This document shows, piece by piece, positions 7,328-36,171 of a stretch of 64,000 nt of DNA (its first letter is position 1; each line of letters starts with the position of its first letter). The position numbers were made by a program, and so were the translations under genes. The DNA is from Guillardia theta CCMP2712. Lineage: Eukaryota > Protista > Cryptophyta. The notes under the pieces are model-generated. The model did no database searches. It was not told where the DNA came from and saw nothing but the letters and a program-made list of their open reading frames with translations. Location: the NCBI RefSeq assembly GCF_000315625.1, contig NW_005434671.1, positions 414,078 to 478,077 on the forward strand, read 5' to 3'.

Positions 7328-7360
7328 TTTACTCAAAGTTAAGTTAAAAATCAGTACGAG
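7328..7360 (+). repeat. Dispersed motif copy 1 (left flank + core)
   Basis: TTTACTCAAAGTTAAGTTAAAAATCAGTACGAG. Confidence 0.85.
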
Positions 7361-7379
7361 CTGCGAGGTACCAGTTTAA

Positions 7380-7880
7380 TCATTACAGTGACTTAACCCG
7401 GGGTTCGGTGGCGCCGGGCCGTCCGATGAGTCCGATGATCGGATCATAGTACTTCGAGTCTTTCAATCACTAGGTGAGACGGCACTGCACCGTACCGGGG
7501 CCCGGCCCGGTGATTGGATCATCGAGTCGGATGCAAAGGCTAACTGCAATAGGCGGTCCGCCTCGGAGCCGCTGACTGAGTCCGGACGGGTCAGCCCCTC
7601 CGGCGTAACATGGCGAGTTTCACATGATTGATTTTTCACGTTTTGTGCGGCCCTGGCGCGCCGCGGCCGCACTGGCCACCGAGCGCCGGACTCTCCGGGA
7701 GCGCGGCTTGCCCCCTTCCCCCCCCCCGGCCCGGGCCCCGGCCCCCCGGCCCCCCCGCGGCCCGGCCTCCGAGGCTCCCGGGCCCCACGTGACGGCCCCC
7801 CGGTCCGGCGACAGGCGGCCGGGCCGGGCCCGCCGGCTACTAGGACTCGGTGACTCGGGATACGTACCAGTTCAATCTAA
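7380..7880. other. GC/CCGG-rich non-coding island 1
   Basis: Dense CCGG/GGCC/GACTCGG/GATC words, no credible ORF, bracketed by motif copies 1 and 2. Confidence 0.7.
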
Positions 7881-7881
7881 A

Positions 7882-7913
7882 TTAAGTTAAAAAATCAGTG
7901 AGGACAATCAGGA
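7882..7913 (+). repeat. Dispersed motif copy 2 (core + right flank)
   Basis: TTAAGTTAAAAAATCAGTGAGGACAATCAGGA. Confidence 0.8.
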
Positions 7914-8301
7914 GAGTAGAAAAGACAGCGATACTATGATAATCAAACCTAATCCTGCCGACTGCTGTCCCCTAACTTAGTAATAACGTACCCGTTTAAT
8001 AATACACGATTGAGAGTTTTTGTGCAGCAAGGAGTCGAAATGGGAGGAGGGAGGAGCTGAAGAGAGGCATGGCGCGTGCTGGTGGAAGGATCAAGGGACG
8101 AGGATATCAACTCGCAGGAGGTCATGGGAGAGTGATAGAGGTTCCTATACGAAAAAGGGGCAAGGCAAAACTTCATAACGAGGACGGAGTGAGAGCAAGC
8201 ATGTAGACAGAAGGGGACGTGAGCGAGTACAGCGATCATTCGTTAACTCGTATCGACCAAGTGCTGATCATGTTCCGCAGAGGGTCGAGAGCCTGCGCTG
8301 G

Positions 8302-21489: not shown

Positions 21490-22260
21490 TCATCATTTCG
21501 GGATCATTTCAAAGATACTACTGTGACAATCGAGCCCCGGGCCCGAGTCCCGGCGGCCGCAGGCGGCCGCTTCCGGATCGGATGGGCCGCGGCGCCGCTG
21601 GGCTCAGTACCGCCCGGCGCGCGGCCCGGCGCCTCGCCGGATGCCGCCATGAAGTGGGCCGGCGGCTGGTGGGCCCGGGCCCGGGCCCGGGCCCGGGCCG
21701 GGCCGGTTGATGTCGGTGCCGGCTCAGTACGCCGGTCACGACTGTTCACCCGGTCACTAAGTCACGGGCAGTGCAGCGGCGTTAACTGTGACGGCCGCGG
21801 GTCCGAAGTTTTGGAGACCCGGACTCGACACCGGGTTTACTAGTGAAAGCCAAGCCTTAGAGTCAGCAAGTGCAGTGCCGCGGCACTGAGCCGGCCGGCC
21901 CCAGGCCCTGTGCGGCGGCTTTTCAGTTTGACTCGGAGCCTGGCAACTTTCAACTGCCGCTCGGATGCCGCAGCTGCCTCCACCCTCCTGCCGCGTGCTT
22001 TCAACCCTTCGGCCGCTCCATCCTGCCCGGCCCTGGAAAGCGCGGCCCCCGCGCGTGACAGGCTGGACTGCCGCCGGCCGGGCTGTGATCACACTGGCTG
22101 CCGCGCCATGATTTTAAGTTACTCCCATGATTACCGTACTAGTCACTCCTCGTACTGATTTTTAACTTAACTTTGACTCACCGTAGAAGAAGTCCGAGGG
22201 CCAGCCGGGAGGGCGCGCCGGAGCCCGGCTCGGACATAGCGTTGCCGTTCCGTATCCTTG
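21490..22260. other. GC/CCGG-rich non-coding island 2
   Basis: (GCCCGG)n, GACTCGG and CAGT words; contains motif copy 3 near its right edge. Confidence 0.7.
22147..22176 (-). repeat. Dispersed motif copy 3
   Basis: + strand TCCTCGTACTGATTTTTAACTTAACTTTGA. Confidence 0.85.
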
Positions 22261-23281
22261 TCGGATCAGTTAACCAGGGTGGTTCTCATAGTAGTTTTAG
22301 TCAAATTCAAGCGGCAAGAGAAAATTGAGCTAAAAATGTTGGCTCCGTCAATTTATGTACCTTTTTCGTTGCCAGGGGCTGCCGGGCCATCCAAGACAAG
22401 AAGGGCGATGTTGAGCAAAACCTTCCTCTATTTGATATGAATAGGCGTGTATAGTTGACTAAATAATCATGAGGAGGCTCGGGGTAGGTATTCAAATGAT
22501 TTGAATCTTTCCAACGGCCTCCAGCCCGTGTTGAGGGGTAGGGGGTAGTGCAAACTTCTCGTATCAATCTAAAACACTTGTAAACGACCTCACACTTGCC
22601 CCGGTCTCTTCCCTATCCCACTACTCCCAATGTACTCAGGGACTGTTTGCTCAGCTGCTGAGCGCAGTCAAGGACCATGGCCCCTCAATGCTAACTCCTG
22701 AAACTGCCAGGCAAGTACTGAGATCAAACAGCTCAATTCTTGGCTGAGAATCACACCTATAGTAGGTTGAATGTGTAAGGTATGCATCTCATCGAAATTT
22801 GCACTTGCGTACCAAAGCACTCATCAGCTATAGGTGATGGTTGTTCACTTCCAGAAGAAGGGAAACATGAAGGGAACCGATCAGAGAAGCAACCTTCGAA
22901 GACATGAAGGAAATTCGATTCTCCTTGTTGTGTTGACGCCCTAGCTTCCTTTACCTGAATGCTTCGTCGGTTGAATAAGAAACATATTTCAAGAGACTTC
23001 CTGTTGCTTTGCCATGATTGCGTTTTTTGAGGCTTCTCCCAACCTATTGTAATATGGCGGTGTCATTTGTGAGGAGGTGAGGAGTTTGAGAGGCTGGGGG
23101 AAGGAGAGGGGAGGGGTTGGAAGGGAAATGGACGCCTGGGAGGCCAGGCTAGTTGACATGCCTGATCGCTGCGAGAGGAGATGCCGGAGGAGAGACCGTG
23201 TTTACTCAAGACCACTAGCGAGGAAGGCAGGAGGGCGAGGAGGACATGAGAGGAGAGGAAGGAGAAACGGGTAGAGACGGT

Positions 23282-24220
23282 TTACTTGACAGCACTAATG
23301 AGGAAGGGATGCTTCAGAGCCTCCAGTGCTGTAATCCTCGTGCGGGGATCGATGTTGAGGCAGCAGTTGAGGAAGTCCCAGATCGCATGTTTCTCATCCA
23401 CCTCCAGCCAGTCCTTGCATCCCGCATGCGCGCCCAGGGAGCTTGACAAGGTCCGCCATGTTTGCTTGAAACCGCGGGCATAGCTGAGATGCAGTTCCAA
23501 TGGTGGAATCTGAATGACATCAAGTTAGCAACCTCAGGCCTCCCGCCACCATATCACCCTCATCCTCATCCTCTTGATACAACAACGCCGACGACAACAA
23601 TTTTACCTTAACGTCGAGGAGCTTCCACACAGCATCCATGCTCTTGATGTACATGCGCAAGCTGCTCAGACAGTCAGACAAGCGCACTTCCAAGGTACAC
23701 AAAGAGCGTACCCGTAGATCTCCATCGTTGCCGTGACTATGTCGTTATACTGGAACCATTGGAACTGTGTCGTGCGGCACAGCAGGGTAAGCAGTACTAC
23801 CCCAGCAGCCCACACGTCCACTGCTGTGGTCTGGCACTGCATGCCCATGAGCACTTCGGGCGCTCGGTATCCCCGAGTTCCCGCGCGTTTGACTGGACGT
23901 TCGAATTTGACCCCTGAGTTCCTCACTGTCACCGATGCGTTCGTCTTGCTGACGCCCAACATGATCCGCCTCTTCGCCATCTGCTGCGCCATCTCTAGCT
24001 TCTCCTGCTCCTTTTGATTCCGCGAGGAGCGAGAGCTGGCCGTAGAAACCTCACAGGGCAAGATGTTGCCGATGCTGCGGCCTGATGACTGCATTTGTTT
24101 CTCTGCCAGCCCAAAGTCCACAAGCAAGTACTTCTTATTCCTTCTGTCGTAGAGGAAGTTATTCAATTTCACGTCTCGATGTATAATAAATGTATAATGT
24201 ATAAGACAGTTCTTGCTCAA
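23282..24220 (-). pseudogene. CDC7: CDC7 kinase, C-lobe only (5'-truncated)
   Basis: IIHRDVKLNNFLY....KYLLVDFGLA, kinase insert, RAGTRGYRAPEVL, TTAVDVWAAGV, RITALEALKHPF. No GxGxxG or VAxK exon is visible upstream. Confidence 0.7.
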
Positions 24221-24339
24221 GACCGAGTTTAACTAAGTAATGCACACTGTGACACGAAACCACTGAGAATTGAGGCCCAGCACTGCACATGAGAGACTCC
24301 CGACAGTATGCTAGAATATGAAACTCAGTCAAGCATCAT

Positions 24340-25010
24340 TGCAACGCCGCCGCTGTTCCGATGACACGGACCGGGTACGGCCCGGTACCGCCGGGCATTG
24401 CCGCCGCGTGGGGCCGCCGCCTGGCTCGGAACTTGACTCTCAACGTGACCGTTCAACGGTTGACTCACCGGCTACGGTACCCGGTAGCCTTGAAGCCTCA
24501 GAGGTCCCGGGGAGTCCGGCTCGCCCGGCCGGGCAGCGCCGTCGGACCTTCAACCGAGTTTTCAGCCTGTGTTCAATTAACGGGAGTCAGCGGGGCTATC
24601 TGATCGGACTGGCCGCATGGCTGGCATGCTGCCACTCGGATCCCGGCATTAATCAGCAGTCGGCCGACGGTGACGGCGCCGTCTCACTGAGCCTCCGCCG
24701 GGCGGCGGCCGCGGCGGCCGGGCGCCGGAGCCCGAGCCTGGCAGTCACTCAGCGGCTGAGTGCCGCGCCAGCCCGGCGCTGACCGGACTCAGTGACTCGG
24801 CCTTGGAACCGTCACGGTGCCTGCTTGCCAGCGCCGGGGCGGCCCCGGTACTACGCCGGGTAGCCTGAGTCACCGGGTGTCAGACACAACTTGAACAGTC
24901 GGAGGTCAACATAACTTAACATAACATGGCATGCCAGGCTTCTGAGTCGGAACTTGGAACACTCAGTGCGCCGCCCGAAACTTTCAAATGATTCAGGGCC
25001 GGGCGGCCAC
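24340..25010. other. GC/CCGG-rich non-coding island 3
   Basis: Same word composition as islands 1 and 2; runs into the hairpin array. Confidence 0.7.
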
Positions 25011-25036
25011 AAAAAATATTTCACTGTGGAACCGTG

Positions 25037-26213
25037 AACTTGAAAATTGAGGGGGTGTTCGGCCTGAAATCTTTGTGCCAGTGTCACGCTCCTCCAAGTT
25101 TCAAGTTGTTCCATATAGTTTGGAGCAAGTCCAACCTACATGGAACAACTTGAAAATTGAGGGGGTGTAAGAACTCGCCGCCGATAAGTTCTTGGAGACG
25201 GCGAGAACTTCCGAAGTTCAGGGTATTGCGTCTCATCGGTAGACGGGGGCGAACTTGAAGCTCAGCGACTCAGATGCAAGTGGGCTTTGACATAGGTCTG
25301 GAATTAGCAGTGAAAAGGGGGTGAGGAGGACACGTGTCCAGGGCGCTGCCACGGTGCATTCAAACCGGTACTTGGTCACTGGAGTCACGGTTGCAACTTC
25401 CGGGACTGAAGGGGAGGTGACTGCTGTGAATAAAGGAAGTGTTGGTGGTGTCAGTGTGTGGTTCTTCTGACTCGGAGCCTTCTATCATCATCAGTGAAGG
25501 TGTTAGAGACTGCACAGCTGTGTATCGTTGAGATGAATAAGGTTGGGGTAAGGATCTCAGGTGTACTGAGAGATAGTGTTTGCCGTGGATCTTGGGTTAA
25601 ATAGAGTATCTGGCCAGTGAGGTGGAGGTTGATTCGATTAGCCGGGGTGTTCGGCCTGACTCAATCATTGTGTGTCACGCTCCCGGAGTCCAAGTTTCAA
25701 GTTGTTCCATATAGTTTGGAGCAAGTCCAACCTACATTGAACAACTTGAAAATTGAGGGGGTGTTCGGCCTGAAATCATTGTGTGTCACGCTCCTGCGGC
25801 CTGAAATCATTGTGTGTCACGCTCCTCCAAGTTTCAAGTTGTTCCATATAGTTTGGAGCAAGTCCAACCTACATGGAACAACTTGAAAATTGAGGGGGTG
25901 TTCGGCCTGACTCAATCATTGTGTGTCACGCTCCCGGAGTCCAAGTTTCAAGTTGTTCCATATAGTTTGGAGCTAGTCCAACCTACATGGAACAACTTGA
26001 AAATTGAGGGGGTGTTCGGCCTGAAATCATTGTGTGTCACGCTCCTGCGGCCTGAAATCATTGTGTGTCACGCTCCTCCAAGTTTCAAGTTGTTCCATAT
26101 AGTTTGGAGCAAGTCCAACCTACATGGAACAACTTGAAAATTGAGGAGGTGTTCGGCCTGAAATCATTGTGTGTCACGCTCCTGCGGCCTGAAATCTTTG
26201 TGTGTCACGCTCC
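25037..26213. repeat. Tandem array of five palindromic (hairpin) units with 31-bp subrepeats
   Basis: Core TTTCAAGTTGTTCCATATAGTTTGGA-GCAAG-TCCAACCTACATGGAACAACTTGAAA at 25099, 25695, 25832, 25946 and 26083; spacing of the last four is 137/114/137. Confidence 0.95.
25169..25643. mobile_element. 475-bp non-coding segment inside the array flanked by GGGGTGT direct repeats (insertion with TSD, or LTR-like)
   Basis: GGGGTGT at 25162-25168 and 25644-25650; removing the segment restores the regular unit junction. The left junction reads TTGAGGGGG-TGTAAG, resembling PPT + LTR start. Confidence 0.6.
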
Positions 26214-26299
26214 CATCGCAAGTCAGCTTTGATGGCCATTATGGCCTTCACAGGCGTGGCTGGCCCTCCGAAGCTCAATCATGATGCATCGCCAATACG

Positions 26300-28210
26300 A
26301 TATCAAATATCAAAATGAAAAATATCAATGTTGAAAGTTTCCCGCCACTGTGAACTCTGCGAAGCCGTACAGATATGAGGATGTGCAGCGTTTGACAGAG
26401 CAAGACAAGTCAGGTGAGCATTATCTCTTTTTTTCATCGAAATTATCACGGGAAGAGATCCAAATGACGTGTTCTTGATGCAGGTTGGAATGATTTGCAG
26501 CCTTTGGCAACTTGTATGAGATTGATGAACGGGTGAAGACTTTGGCAAGTGCCCAACCAATATTACAAACCGGTATCCAGGAGTACGTAGACGTACCAGT
26601 AAGCCGCCCAGCATACAAAACTCTCGAGACAATGGCTGCATACGAAGGGGGTTTCGACACATCGCAGAACTGTCCCGATGTGAAAAGGTTGTGACATGAA
26701 ATGGGCACAAACAAAGATAAGTTCAGGACTCGGGAGTCGATCAGGTCTAGGCAAAATATTGACATGGTCATCTCACTGCATGGAAGAACATGCAAAACTG
26801 AAGGAAAAGCTCAACGGAAAGTTCTAAATGAACAGATACAGCGCATTTTAGCAGTCACGGTCGGAGCAGCTCGATGCTTGAAACAAAGATGATCCTCAGT
26901 ACAATCGAATGATGACAAGTAAGTCCCGTGGTTCGTGAAGGATTCTTCATCCAATTCTTAAGGATGTGTTGGAACGATGAAACATTTTGCAAATCACCAA
27001 TTTCATCACACTGACTGATGCATCATGTAAATATTACTGGTGTGAACTTGCATCAGATTCTGTTCATCGGATGAGCCGCTACCAAGCAGTTGATGTCACA
27101 GCAAACAAGAGAGCCGTTTTGAAGATGTTGATATTCCTGACCGTAGAGCATTCAAGATGTGGCCACATGTCACATGCTTCTTGGTTAACGCAGATACACC
27201 CTCGCCAGGCAAAAGATGGAACGTCTTCAGGATTACAGGGAGGTCGGTTGTGCTTGTACCCTGATTGTAACTCTTCTAATAAAGATATGATAACCTGAAT
27301 GTGCAATTCTGTTTGTTGATTCACAGTGTTTGCGACTCGATTGCAATCATCGAGTGCTTGCTCTGTTGAACAAGGCACTCCTCTGTAGAGCCATGCGACA
27401 AGAACACTACAGTTGCACGGTAGCATTGCGACACCAAGACAGGATTGATCCGATGAACGTCTCATTTATTGATACGCAAAGGCATCATCTGCACATTGCT
27501 TCATTTCTGACTAGGTTTCTGTGCAATCGAAATCCTTGTGAAAATATCATGACAAAGGAAAAATTTGAAGCGAAACGGAAAAATCATCGAAATATGATCA
27601 TAGATATAGTGATTCATGATCAACAACGGTTCTCTACAGTCATCTATGCGGGCAGGAACAGTCATCTTCTGTGCAAACGTCTCTTCATGTATCGTTGAAC
27701 GGTTGAGTGCATGTAAGACTTGCCTCCATAGAAAGGTGAAGTGCATGAATCCTGACTGTAAGACTAGAAGAATTGAAAGCAAGTGATGACATGAGAACAC
27801 ATATCTAGACAGAAAAGTCGCTCAAGGTACAGCTGGATACAAATTTCTCACAAATCACAGTCATGCATTTGAGCGCAACGTGCAACCTACGGCAATTTGA
27901 ATAAAGGGTCAATCAGAGTTGATTCTGTTCAATGGTGTATCGATTATCAATTCCTTACCTGATCATAAAAATTTCATCTTGTCTTCGAAGAATATTTGCA
28001 AGTACACCCGCGGATTGTTTGAACCTAGGGTGCATATTCCATTGCAGGATGGATGATTCAAACCTTGGCCCAACCTGTAGAGTTGAGAAAGAAGCTCGAT
28101 CATCTCTTACAGGTATGATATGAGATCTTCATCTCATTTCTATCTCAGTTGGGTTGGATTCGAAGTCTCTCAATATCAAAGTTCATCCTGGTGAGTCAGG
28201 AAGGCACCAT
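26300..28210 (-). CDS. Orphan multi-exon gene or degenerate gene of unknown function
   Basis: Several GT-AG-bounded open segments (e.g. VGPRFESSILQWNMHPRF.., ORF 27079-27465); no recognisable domain. Confidence 0.3.
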
Positions 28211-28882
28211 TTCATCGCTTCTTGCTCGTCCAGGGAGAGGGGGCTTGGGGAATGAGAAATGGGTGTTACCCCCACCCCCTATTGTAGAGTTTCAAACTCG
28301 TTCAAAGGTGGGTAGTTGAGGGTGCTCCATACCCACCCCACCACCCAAAATGACTCAAACGGAGGGGTTCTCGGATCCGAAGGAGTCCCGCCTCGATCAC
28401 CCCCTCTCATTTGAATTCAAGATGGTTCAGGCCGACCCCACATACAGGCTTGCAGTTTTCTTATGTATGCCCATATGATTTGATCGGACAGGCCCCAGGT
28501 TCAAGGGATGAAGCAATTCACCAGCATGCTTGAAGATTTTTCATGGGAGTGGGGTTATACTTGTACCGGATGTGTACAATACATAGGGGAGAACCCCGAA
28601 TGGTACCAAAAGAGTACCAAAGTCACATGGTTCGGACTGTACTAACTGGTACCAAGAAATTGTACTCAAGAAGACCCTACCCCTGAAAAAGTTCTGCTTG
28701 GCTCTTCGTGATTTGAATTCGGAACACGGTCGGAAGACCCACCCCGCCCCCACATGAGGCGTGGTATGCGTGGATTTGAATCTACCACCCTCACCGCGAA
28801 ACGTTTTAGAGCTCCAAGGTCAATTGAGAAAGGCAACGCTATGACTCGAGCCTGAAGGCCGGCGCGGAGCCTGTGACTGCTT

Positions 28883-28926
28883 TCCTGATTGTCCTCGTAC
28901 TGATTTTTAACTTAAGTTTGAGTAAA
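28883..28926 (-). repeat. Dispersed motif copy 4 (full length)
   Basis: + strand TCCTGATTGTCCTCGTACTGATTTTTAACTTAAGTTTGAGTAAA. Confidence 0.85.
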
Positions 28927-29467
28927 AGTCACGGCTCCCGACCGTACCAAGTTCAGTTAGGTGTAAATGGGGCTACGTGGCATGTCCCCGAGCCTAGTCG
29001 ACCGGTCGCAATTCCGGTAGTAATGATGGAGCTCCGTAGGAGAAGTCCGAAGGGCCTTGGAGAACCCGAGAGGTTGTTGCAGTGACAAGGAGGGGTGGTC
29101 TAGCACGATGAAGGGGTCAGCCAATGGCAATGGCTCCAAAGAGTTTGTTTTCAAGATTCAACAACTCACTCACTCACACTCTAGAGTCGTACCTGCCGCT
29201 CCCTCAACTTTTACAGAAGTAACCCACCCCAGTAGCTTCACCCGCCCCCCTTCACTGGCTGCTCCTGCCTCTACTCCTCTACGCTCTCCGGGCTAAAGCC
29301 TCTTTCCTAATCGTAGATCTTATCTCTAGTCGACTTTGCTACACCTTAGTCAGACTGCAACAAGCACAACATTGTTGTTTATCTGCCGTTTCTCTCCCCA
29401 GGATCCAGAGATCCTTCTCAATCAGCACATCCATCCCTCGCCCGCCCTGCACACCTTCAGTTCCCAT

Positions 29468-29967
29468 ATGAGCTCCCTGACGCCCTTCCGACACCGACGG
29501 AATAAGAAAACGGCGGAGCTCACCCAGGACTTCCTTGAAAGTCTTTTTGTCCTCCGGCAGCAGGATGCTGCTCAGATGCTGGTGAGTCGCTCCGTCCTCT
29601 CCTTTCCCGACTGATTTAGAAACGCGAGCAGGGCTTTTCCATCACCACAATGAAGCACCTGTGCCGACGACTAGGCATCCGCAAGTGGCCGTACTCGCGC
29701 GGGCGACCAAGGGAGCTCGAAGCGGAGGGTACGAAGTCCGTGCTGATCAGCCCGCGTGAGACCCGTGTCATCCCCCAGCAACCGCAACAAACAGTTGGCG
29801 AAGACTGCGCGCTCGGGGATCAGGGCGAAGAGGAAGGATTCTTTCAGCAGGTCGAGCAGGAGGGCGAGCGGTATTGGATAAGCAGGACTAGCGATGACAT
29901 GGAAGGTCTCTTTCGAGAGGCGCTTGACCACGTACAAGGCAAGAGTAAGGGGGACAGGCGGAGTTGA
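29468..29967 (+). CDS. Small RWP-RK domain transcription factor, 2 exons
   Basis: Removing intron 29582-29631 gives LTQDFLESLFVLRQQDAAQML|GFSITTMKHLCRRLGIRKWPYSR. Confidence 0.88.
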
Positions 29968-30899: not shown

Positions 30900-31660
30900 T
30901 CACGTTGCTGCCAAGTTGGCCTCGGTCTCTCCAGCTCTTCATTTTTGTCCCCACTGGAGTTTGCCTTCTTCAAGCGTCAGCTTCCATATCAGGAGGGCGG
31001 GGATGGTTTCACACCCCAAGCAGGGGTTAGTCTATCTGCTTATTACATCGCCCTCCGTCAAGCGGACGAGCCGGATCTGGCCCTTCCTCTCCTACTAGCT
31101 TCCTTCCTGCGGGTGCGTCAGGCCCTGCTTGATCGTGGAGTGCTGCAATATTATATCACCTCGGTGACCTAGACAGCGCACGTCTGAGCAACGAGATCCA
31201 TCGCCTGCTCTCTTTCAACTCGCTGGTTCAGGCAGCTCTTCGCCGGGCCTGTCATGGCACTTACACAGTGGAGCTCTATCCCCCGAGTCAGCGAGTCAGT
31301 CTTCTAGCCCGTTCCCTTCGAACCCTCAGCGGCTCCTGCAAGACTCTCTGCCTCCCACCTGTGATCGCTGTGCTACTACTTTAGACCCATCGGCGCCATC
31401 GCGCATGAGCAGTGTACTGTGGTTCTTCGTGACGATGCCAGCGAAGTTCTTGGCAACATCTGCGCTGGCATCGTCACGAAGCTTCATCAGGAGGGTCTCC
31501 AACACCCGGACGCATGTCCACATGGGCGACCTCTGGCTCCCTGCCCTTTCCACCGCCACCTGGAATTCCGGTCCCACCCAAAAGAAGATTTCGGATCATC
31601 GCACAAGCTATGCCGCCCATCTCCCGCCGCAGGGAAGCCTTTCTTCGCTTCGCTGCAGGT
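30900..31660 (+). mobile_element. Degenerate CRE-like (RLE-type) non-LTR retrotransposon fragment, copy A
   Basis: Frameshifted motifs QLPYQEGGDG..SAY (RT thumb-like LP...GG.G), CDRC..LDP..H..C..RDD (Zn knuckle-like) and HMGDLWLP..KISDHR.SY (RLE-like). Shares DNA blocks with copy B. Confidence 0.6.
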
Positions 31661-31765
31661 AGATGGTCTGCTTCAGGTAGATGGTCTTCTTGAGGTAGGT
31701 GGTCTTCTTCAGGTAGATGGTCTTCTTGAGGTAGGTGGTCTTCTTGAGGTAGGTGGTCCTCTTCC
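31656..31765. repeat. 18-bp minisatellite x~6 ([C/G]AGGTAG[A/G]TGGTCTTCTT)
   Basis: Direct reading; encodes (Q/E)EDHLP repeats on the - strand. Confidence 0.9.
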
Positions 31766-34542: not shown

Positions 34543-36171
34543 ATGCGGGGGCGCCGCCATGCAGCTGGGGCGGCAGCAGCAGCTGGGATGCTGCTGGTTC
34601 TCATCTGCGACTTTGGGCTAGAGGGGACAAGAGAGGAGGAAAAGGAGAGCAGCGACGAGTTACAGGGAAGTTTTCAGCAGGGACAGGAATCGCGAGCAGG
34701 AGGTCGTCTGATGGGTGCCTGGAAGACCGATGACTTGAACGCTTTCGCAGCTGAGAACTCTGCCGTTGAACGATTTCCTTCGATCGTTGTAGTACCCCCT
34801 GGTATGATGCATCTCCAGGACACTGGCATGAAACCTACGAGCACTGTTCAGCCGAGTCCTCGTCCAAATGCTAGTCATCACCCTTTCTCATGGCAACGGG
34901 TCAACTCCCACCATGCTACTCAGGTGGAGAAATCTCTTCGAAGGATGGATGGAAGCGAAGACATAACTGAAGATCATTGCTATTATGATCAACCTGAAAT
35001 GCTCGTCCAAGAGCTCCGTCACTCGATTTGCGATCTGCATTCAAACATGGGAGAGCAGGCATGTGCTCAGTTGTGGTCGCAAGTTCGTCAGCTGCAAGGT
35101 GATAGCGTGGGTTACGTTCTACAGCAAGAAAGGGATTGGAATCCCAAGTTTAGAAGCTCCTTCTCTCAATTCCTTTACAAGATCTCTGCTCCTACCCCTT
35201 CGATGGGCTCAGGAGATCAGTTGGGGTATGTGACTTCAGGGTTCACGTTGAAAGGACCTCTTGCCACGTGGTTTCCTCGAGGAGATCAGGCAGGTGCTGC
35301 CGTTGCGAGCTGCCAGCCTGTTGATCTCTCATGGAACTTGGATTACCTGAGTCTCAACTGGCTGCAGGGTAACAGGATCCCCTTCGCTGTCAAGGATTGT
35401 GCAGGAAAGGAGGTCAGCAGGTTTTCAGTCGATTGTCGTTCTCACCCCTTCCAAGGAACTGGTAAGGGCAGGAGTTCGTCTAAACTCAACCTGGAGATGC
35501 TCAATGCCAAGGCAATGCATGTAGAGGAAGAGGCGATCCGAGGTCCCGGCAGTGGCGTCTTGGGATGGCAATTCTACATCACTGGGGAGGATGGGGAGGC
35601 GGTTGGTTCAATGATAAGAATCAACTCAGCAAATAAGGCGTGGATACTGCAGGCCAATCGTGCGGGCCAAGTGGATTTGAGACTCCTCGTCATGGTAGCG
35701 TCTATCCTGGACTTCACGTTCTACAAGAAAGTTGCTGGATTCTTTGTTGGTTTTTTGGTGTCTGTACTGGCAGTTGCCACCTTTGTGCCGCTCTGGCTCT
35801 GTCTGTGCTACAGGGGAAAGAGGGGACAACGTGGATCTCTGGTGACTAAAAAAGGTCACGATGATGACAAGGAAGGCGGTATCAGACCAATTGTAGAAGT
35901 ACCCAATGACCCGAAACAAGAGCATCGTACCGAGGAGAAAAGCCAAGAGCAAGAACAAGAAAACCTACTCCAAGAGGAGAATGATCTAAAGGCAGAGGAG
36001 GAAGATCTTAAGGTCAGCTCCGTACCGTCTTCCTTTCCCTCTCTCATGCATGCTTCATCCTTGCAGGAAAATGCTGATCCATCAAGTGTCGGCGTTGAGC
36101 TAGAAGAAGCGATTGCAGCCATCGACAGGGCCATAGACAGGAACAGCGCAACGCGCAACTCGAGGCGATGA
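34543..36171 (+). CDS. Membrane protein, possible scramblase/LURP-one-like region
   Basis: 542-aa ORF with N-terminal hydrophobic segment, WQFYITGEDGEAVG..DLRLLVMVASILD, a TM near aa 400 and an acidic tail; probable in-frame 3' intron. Confidence 0.6.
   Translation: MRGRRHAAGAAAAAGMLLVLICDFGLEGTREEEKESSDELQGSFQQGQESRAGGRLMGAWKTDDLNAFAAENSAVERFPSIVVVPPGMMHLQDTGMKPTSTVQPSPRPNASHHPFSWQRVNSHHATQVEKSLRRMDGSEDITEDHCYYDQPEMLVQELRHSICDLHSNMGEQACAQLWSQVRQLQGDSVGYVLQQERDWNPKFRSSFSQFLYKISAPTPSMGSGDQLGYVTSGFTLKGPLATWFPRGDQAGAAVASCQPVDLSWNLDYLSLNWLQGNRIPFAVKDCAGKEVSRFSVDCRSHPFQGTGKGRSSSKLNLEMLNAKAMHVEEEAIRGPGSGVLGWQFYITGEDGEAVGSMIRINSANKAWILQANRAGQVDLRLLVMVASILDFTFYKKVAGFFVGFLVSVLAVATFVPLWLCLCYRGKRGQRGSLVTKKGHDDDKEGGIRPIVEVPNDPKQEHRTEEKSQEQEQENLLQEENDLKAEEEDLKVSSVPSSFPSLMHASSLQENADPSSVGVELEEAIAAIDRAIDRNSATRNSRR

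Follow-up and report, generated by a model that had tools for sequence, protein, structure and literature searches.

The window (the whole stretch of 64,000 nucleotides that was analysed) carries an array of five near-identical long hairpins, which we read, at a probability of roughly 0.6, as a young, locus-restricted and neutral palindromic minisatellite that is kept uniform by unequal exchange. We infer its neutrality and the order of the events that built it, as well as an expansion driven by the hairpins themselves. The first-pass annotation of this DNA had counted a tandemly amplified miniature element or an ordinary satellite among its readings, and this is the reading favoured by the higher-order array, the older edges, the low copy number and the lack of relatives in our searches.

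Architecture and genomic setting of the array

Five copies of an imperfect palindrome of 83 nt lie between 25086 and 26152, and a truncated sixth copy precedes them on the left. The array is oriented head-to-tail, and its hairpins are of two types:

Hairpin 1: 25086-25168, + strand, A-type
Hairpin 2: 25682-25764, + strand, B-type
Hairpin 3: 25819-25901, + strand, A-type
Hairpin 4: 25933-26015, + strand, B-type
Hairpin 5: 26070-26152, + strand, A-type

From start to start the hairpins are spaced by 596, 137, 114 and 137 bp, and the higher-order unit of 251 bp is composed of 137 + 114 bp. TRF reported a period of 251 with 2.2 copies and 97% matches, as well as periods of 137, 114 and 31; the 251-bp copies, each an A+B dimer, are 99% identical to each other. 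The period of 251 bp is not a multiple of 3, and a protein search with a spurious 110-aa open reading frame running through the array returned no match. In the unit alignment the units could be placed in register and head-to-tail, as is expected of a tandem repeat, and were delimited as follows:

U0: 25019-25058, + strand, cut leftmost unit with the end of the 3′ arm and the outer stem GAGGGGGTGT, lacking the 5′ arm and the loop
U1: 25059-25168, + strand, one module of the 31-bp type, then hairpin 1
U2: 25651-25764, + strand, B-type, 114 bp, module with CTC and CGGAG before hairpin 2
U3: 25765-25901, + strand, A-type, 137 bp, two 31-bp modules and hairpin 3
U4: 25902-26015, + strand, B-type, 114 bp, hairpin 4
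U5: 26016-26152, + strand, A-type, 137 bp, hairpin 5
U6: 26153-26213, + strand, cut rightmost unit with two 31-bp modules, the last being the ATCTTTG variant as in U1

The 31-bp module is present in six copies. A-type units (137 bp) carry it as a tandem duplication, and B-type units (114 bp) have one module plus insertions of CTC (3 nt) and CGGAG (5 nt). As 137 − 31 + 8 equals 114, the loss of one module together with the 3-nt and 5-nt insertions fully explains the higher-order spacing. An alternation of 137 and 114 bp, set mainly by one or two copies of the module, had been described in the first-pass annotation; the unit alignment agrees and adds the two small insertions. The remaining features given there for the five near-identical long hairpins are likewise all present in the DNA. 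Its exclusion of CRISPR also stands, as the "spacers" are the repeated 31-bp module itself and the genome is eukaryotic.

At the left edge, the end of the 3′ arm of U0 reads TGGAAC, followed by the 4-nt insertion CGTG and then by AACTTGAAAATTG. The module of U1 is an edge variant, ATCTTTG, which carries the 4-nt insertion CCAG. This variant occurs only in the first and the last module (at 25063 and 26186), while all interior modules read ATCATTG. The right end of the array falls exactly at the expected start of a 5′ arm. Interior unit copies are 99-100% alike, and hairpins 1 and 3 are 100% identical. The interior is more alike than the edges, as expected under concerted evolution, and the distribution of the two module variants points to edges that are older than the homogenised interior they enclose, a pattern that unequal exchange usually leaves. 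Within each unit, the arms differ from each other at fixed positions in every copy. Exchange between units homogenises units and not arms, which explains how the units can be alike and their arms nevertheless differ.

The array is located in annotated intergenic DNA, with no gene called at 24543-26700 in GCA_000315625.1 (scaffold JH992967.1), which we take to be the nuclear genome assembly of Guillardia theta CCMP2712, a cryptophyte alga. The stretch of JH992967.1 consulted for annotation corresponds to window positions 24543-46171, and an intronless 542-aa open reading frame at 34543-36168 has an exact match on this scaffold of 1.29 Mb. The nearest called genes are a 57-aa gene (26701-26871, + strand) and an RWP-RK gene (29468-29967, + strand). 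On the left, a GC-rich island (24300-24870) adjoins the array, and the neighbouring gene is represented by exons for a protein kinase C-lobe (23285-24232, - strand; Pfam Pkinase, E = 1e-19). The C-lobe of this weakly expressed kinase is CDC7-like with a long insert after DFG. A search for N-lobe exons upstream on the - strand found none, and the gene may be truncated, may be a pseudogene or may have 5′ exons that were missed by the search. The possibility that the array is an intron of the kinase gene was rejected, since there is no N-lobe upstream on the - strand and no called gene across the array. Visual inspection had suggested that a partial unit in inverted orientation forms a fold-back head to the left of the array (24860-25040); this was also rejected, as its local alignment score of 23 is not significant (shuffles: mean 16.2, sd 2.6, maximum 28). 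Just beyond the kinase gene, the region 22800-22980 had an RNA depth of about 680; many of the reads fitted in part only and the alleles were mixed, which suggests a highly expressed repeated sequence or a 3′ UTR.

Summed word depth in DNA run X2 was 2,380, 2,963, 4,162 and 10,110 in the bins of the array, compared to about 1,000-1,400 in the single-copy flanks. This rough measure fits 2-8 copies per word, as assembled, and not hundreds. In the same run, low-depth joints were observed at 25641>26008 and 25647>26185; they may stem from variation in array length, from paralogues or from template switching at the palindromes. The array was seen in the independent DNA runs X1 and X2, and in X6 its right end only. 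X6 is a lake-water metagenome, the contigs of which are about 99% identical to the flanks of the marine alga (22800-28200), for example over 616 nt with 6 differences; this likeness may be due to cross-contamination or a spike-in, or to a closely related freshwater alga.

Neither the hairpin arm nor the unit recurs elsewhere in the 64-kb window. Exact-pattern queries comprising the hairpin, the module and the 3′ arm/purine run yielded 0 matches across viral contigs, JGI metagenomes and prokaryote genomes, the result in prokaryotes being uninformative for a eukaryotic element. For the hairpin and for the module, in particular, viral contigs had 0 matches, and sequence strings of the array had 0 matches in the full text of papers. 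No Rfam family was found at gathering or E-value thresholds; the best sub-threshold scores were obtained with plant miRNA-precursor models that represent generic long hairpins (MIR2646, 44 bits versus 245; MIR9746, 28 versus 79). LTR-like direct repeats at 22147 and 28892 were discarded as LTRs, as they are merely a dispersed motif of 30-64 bp. This motif, with the core TCCTCGTACTGATTTTTAACTTAACTTTGA, has four copies in the window that are 78-97% identical:

22114-22176, + strand: motif with the TCCTCGTACTGATTTTTAACTTAACTTTGA core
28877-28941, + strand: motif with the TCCTCGTACTGATTTTTAACTTAACTTTGA core
7328-7396, - strand: motif with the TCCTCGTACTGATTTTTAACTTAACTTTGA core
7855-7919, - strand: motif with the TCCTCGTACTGATTTTTAACTTAACTTTGA core

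The 475-bp insert, the micro-insertions and a proposed history

The 596-bp spacing between hairpins 1 and 2 is the effect of a 475-bp insertion, which is flanked by a short direct repeat:

25162-25168, + strand: left copy of the direct repeat GGGGTGT, 7 bp
25169-25643: inserted dispersed element, 475 bp, outside the repeat unit and just 3′ of hairpin 1
25644-25650, + strand: right copy of the direct repeat GGGGTGT, 7 bp

Uninterrupted units read GAGGGGGTGTTCGGCC, and the outer stem GAGGGGGTGT is directly followed in them by TCGGCC. At U1, GAGGGGGTGT is followed by 475 bp and then by GGGGTGT-TCGGCC, and the 7-bp repeat GGGGTGT is likely the target-site duplication of the insert. In RNA run X23, reads pile up on 25153-25514 at a depth of 135-185 and fit in patches only; on the insert they carry fixed differences, found in nearly all reads, for example in 471/473 at 25277 and in 705/706 at 25414. 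In DNA run X1, a contig tracks the insert up to about 25640, beyond which its flank is unlike that of the array. Taken together, the patchy RNA fit with fixed differences and the unlike flank of the X1 contig indicate that the insert is a copy of a dispersed element, relatives of which are transcribed elsewhere. Within the window no further copies of the insert were found, and an exact-pattern scan of external sequence collections with the insert block returned 0 matches. The insert lacks terminal inverted repeats, TG..CA ends and poly-A, and ARAGORN detected neither a tRNA-like element nor a tRNA-like head. Compared to its paralogue, the insert carries extra short insertions (61 nt versus 30 nt at 25341-25401), and it looks decayed itself. 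The identity of hairpins 1 and 3 across this decayed-looking insert could be due to conversion, but selection on the hairpin sequence could explain it too.

The indels that distinguish the units make small odd palindromes pivoting on a single C or G. They are located at the following positions:

25659-25662: unit indel, at the same place also in U4
25684-25688: unit indel, at the same place also in U4
25078-25081: unit indel

The CTC insertion results in TGA-C-TCA and the CGGAG insertion in TCC-C-GGA-G-TCC, that is, three bases, C, their reverse complement, G and the same three bases again. The CCAG insertion in U1 results only in CA-G-TG and is a weak case. The array adds three datable cases of palindrome-making micro-insertion, and its founding palindrome may have been made by a local copy-in-reverse process. 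As a weaker alternative to the hairpin-RNA cluster considered below, the array might preserve a record of a fold-back process by which palindromes of up to about 57 nt are written in this genome and then amplified. Elsewhere in the window, a second long palindrome occurs at 31425-31481, with 28-nt arms that are 89% complementary and a 1-nt pivot. Its total of 57 nt equals the length of the hairpin core, and it is situated about 170 bp upstream of a tandem repeat with periods of 18/36/54 bp (31656-31764).

In the history that we propose for the minisatellite, an older palindrome, the arms of which had diverged at 2/26 positions in the core and more outside, would have been copied head to tail together with a 31-bp module. 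One unit type would have gained a duplication of the 31-bp module, leading to the A-type of 137 bp, and the other type would have gained two small palindrome-making insertions, leading to the B-type of 114 bp. The A+B dimer would then have been duplicated to form the 251-bp higher-order unit. Unequal crossing-over or conversion would homogenise the interior, with the edge modules retaining the older variant. The 475-bp dispersed element would have landed later, 3′ of hairpin 1, making the 7-bp duplication. Extrusion of hairpins or cruciforms at replication may favour slippage, and with it the array's own expansion and instability. A neutral origin leaves unexplained why so long a palindrome arose here. 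Read as a minisatellite, the array is of modest value; it is a clean small example of higher-order tandem-repeat assembly that displays module duplication, micro-insertions, dimer duplication and a transposon hit.

Folding, transcription and rival explanations

Of the ten occurrences of the 26-nt arm TTTCAAGTTGTTCCATATAGTTTGGA, the five on the + strand are free of mismatches and the five on the - strand have 2-3 each, compared to a chance expectation of 0. The 57-nt palindrome of the first-pass annotation, with a 26-bp stem, two mismatches and a 5-nt loop, is present in five copies; both mismatches of the core stem are fixed, and the loop reads GCAAG. A wobble extension of this palindrome to about 85 nt had also been proposed. 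It was recovered in the three A-type units, where outer pairing with three G.U wobbles results in a hairpin of about 83 nt, but not to the same extent in U2 and U4, where the CGGAG insertion weakens the outer stem at a cost of about 9 kcal/mol (-37 versus -46 kcal/mol). Both strands fold far better than shuffles: the RNA fold energy was -46.2 kcal/mol on the + strand and -43.8 on the - strand, with z of about -8.8 on each, and 0/200 shuffles folded as well as the hairpin RNA. The DNA fold energy was -27.8 (z -8.3). On the - strand, the A.C mismatch of the core indeed becomes G.U, yielding an unbroken stem of 20 bp. The strand asymmetry is mixed, however, as the G.U pairs of the outer helix become A.C on the - strand. 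With the core favouring the - strand and the outer helix the + strand, neither strand is singled out.

Three point changes occur among the five copies, one each in the loop, in a core pair and in an outer pair. In U4 the loop GCAAG has changed to GCTAG, in U2 a G>T change breaks one core pair, and in U5 a G>A change breaks one outer pair. The covariation among copies that the first-pass annotation had named as a discriminator did not appear: compensatory changes were found at 0/35 predicted pairs, with two pairs broken in one copy each, in a comparison to which the near-identity of the copies leaves almost no power. The existing variation among the hairpin copies is indifferent to pairing.

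We consider it unlikely that the array is the tandemly amplified remnant of a mobile element, be it a fold-back/MITE-like element or a piece of a retroelement. The palindromic unit resembles terminal inverted repeats with a minimal interior, its inverted arms being 30-39 nt long, 82-90% complementary and separated by 5 nt, values at which any palindrome would satisfy such a test for terminal inverted repeats. Some MITEs are known to harbour tandem arrays or to give rise to them, as is reported for DTC84 of the clam Donax trunculus (PMC3879986). However, no target-site duplication occurs at the single hairpins, the flanks CACGCTCCTC and GAGGGGGTG being inverted and not direct; no other copy of the unit is found in the 64 kb, and the depth indicates a low copy number. 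The purine run GAAAATTGAGGGGG, with TGT after it, is reminiscent of a polypurine tract that adjoins the start of an LTR, but this run belongs to every unit and not just to the one adjacent to the insert. No tRNA-like or primer-binding sequence was found, and no transposase or reverse-transcriptase genes were present among the open reading frames of the window that were scanned.

It is rather improbable, in our view, that the array acts as one transcribed precursor, the 26-bp stems of which would be diced to yield small RNAs for the silencing of a target in trans. Every unit does possess a long near-perfect stem of pre-miRNA size on either strand, the best matches of generic miRNA-precursor models, though sub-threshold, fall here, and the + strand contains no TTTT, at which RNA polymerase III would terminate. 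These Rfam scores are 28-44 bits, however, compared to gathering scores of 79-245; there is no covariation, and pair-breaking changes are tolerated. No target-like match to the 26-nt arm at ≤3 mismatches was detected in the 64 kb, and we found no description of miRNAs or hairpin siRNAs in cryptophyte nuclei in the literature.

Transcription of the hairpins, which had been proposed together with their processing, received no support from RNA-seq: zero reads fell on the hairpins in one stranded run, X23, a single ordinary RNA-seq library that is blind to small or rapidly processed RNAs. In X23, of which about 6% was read, the depth was 0 in the hairpin bins 24972-25152 and 25696-26057 and 0.69 in the bin 26058-26238, compared to 10-17 on the weakly expressed exons of the neighbouring kinase. 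On these exons (- strand), first mates amounted to 10.8-16.7 on the + strand versus 0.2-0.3, which fixes the strandedness of the library. Reads were not lost to multi-mapping, since a single read of the whole run could be placed twice within the stretch. The first-pass annotation had stated which outcomes would leave an ordinary satellite or MITE remnant; two of them, a lack of covariation and, in X23, a lack of reads on the hairpins, were observed. Word shares of 0.08-0.15 in runs labelled "RNA?" were rejected as a sign of expression, because the label was guessed and partial DNA coverage explains the shares equally well. We give only a slim chance to a cryptophyte hairpin-RNA gene cluster that is transcribed at a low level or in unsampled conditions and diced from the five stems. 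If true, this would be the first description of such a locus, miRNA-like or for endogenous hairpin siRNAs, from the nucleus of a cryptophyte, and small RNAs from the array would open cryptophyte small-RNA biology.

Very improbable is a role as a cis-acting DNA element, in which cruciform palindromes would bind a dimeric protein as an enhancer, insulator or replication origin and control the flanking genes. The array does lie between the gene for the kinase fragment (- strand) and, on its right, weakly transcribed units, and short-loop palindromes of such length can extrude as cruciforms, as judged from the predicted DNA energy. Each arm contains two CAAGTT-type motifs, and AACTTGAA occurs 21 times in the window versus 2.9 expected, with 11 of these sites within the array. 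However, the neighbours are barely expressed, there is neither conservation nor viral context, and we know of no protein that binds the palindrome of the array. The AACTTGAA sites were also evaluated as a binding-site cluster, and this candidate was rejected: the motif is enriched, but beyond the array its sites are scattered, with two located in coding-like sequence. The likeness to baculovirus hr regions suggested earlier finds no support, with no viral matches, no viral genes nearby and cellular genes as neighbours.

Comparison with known systems

Baculovirus hr regions function as enhancers and origins; their repeats are about 70 bp long and contain one imperfect palindrome of 30 bp each. 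The array resembles them in its tandem units that each contain an imperfect palindrome. In contrast to hr regions, it resides in a cellular algal genome, has no viral genes or matches, and its palindrome is about twice as long.

MITEs with tandem repeats and satellites derived from MITEs, for example DTC84 (PMC3879986), share with the array a short inverted-repeat unit that is associated with a tandem array. Such elements are high-copy, dispersed and flanked by target-site duplications, whereas the array has none of these duplications at its hairpins and no dispersed copies in the 64 kb.

Polycistronic miRNA or hairpin-RNA loci likewise combine several near-perfect hairpins of pre-miRNA size in one orientation and at regular spacing. 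The array differs from such loci in having no detected transcript, no covariation and no Rfam family at threshold.

Satellites with internal dyad symmetry are exemplified by the human palindromic AT-rich repeats (PATRRs). Unlike satellites of the PATRR type, the array is confined to a single locus with about 0.7 kb of repeat, its unit sequence lacks known relatives, and its palindrome is not especially AT-rich. With satellites that combine higher-order repeats and dyad symmetry it shares the head-to-tail arrangement, a higher-order unit, the homogenised interior with older edges, the non-coding nature and the predicted hairpin or cruciform.
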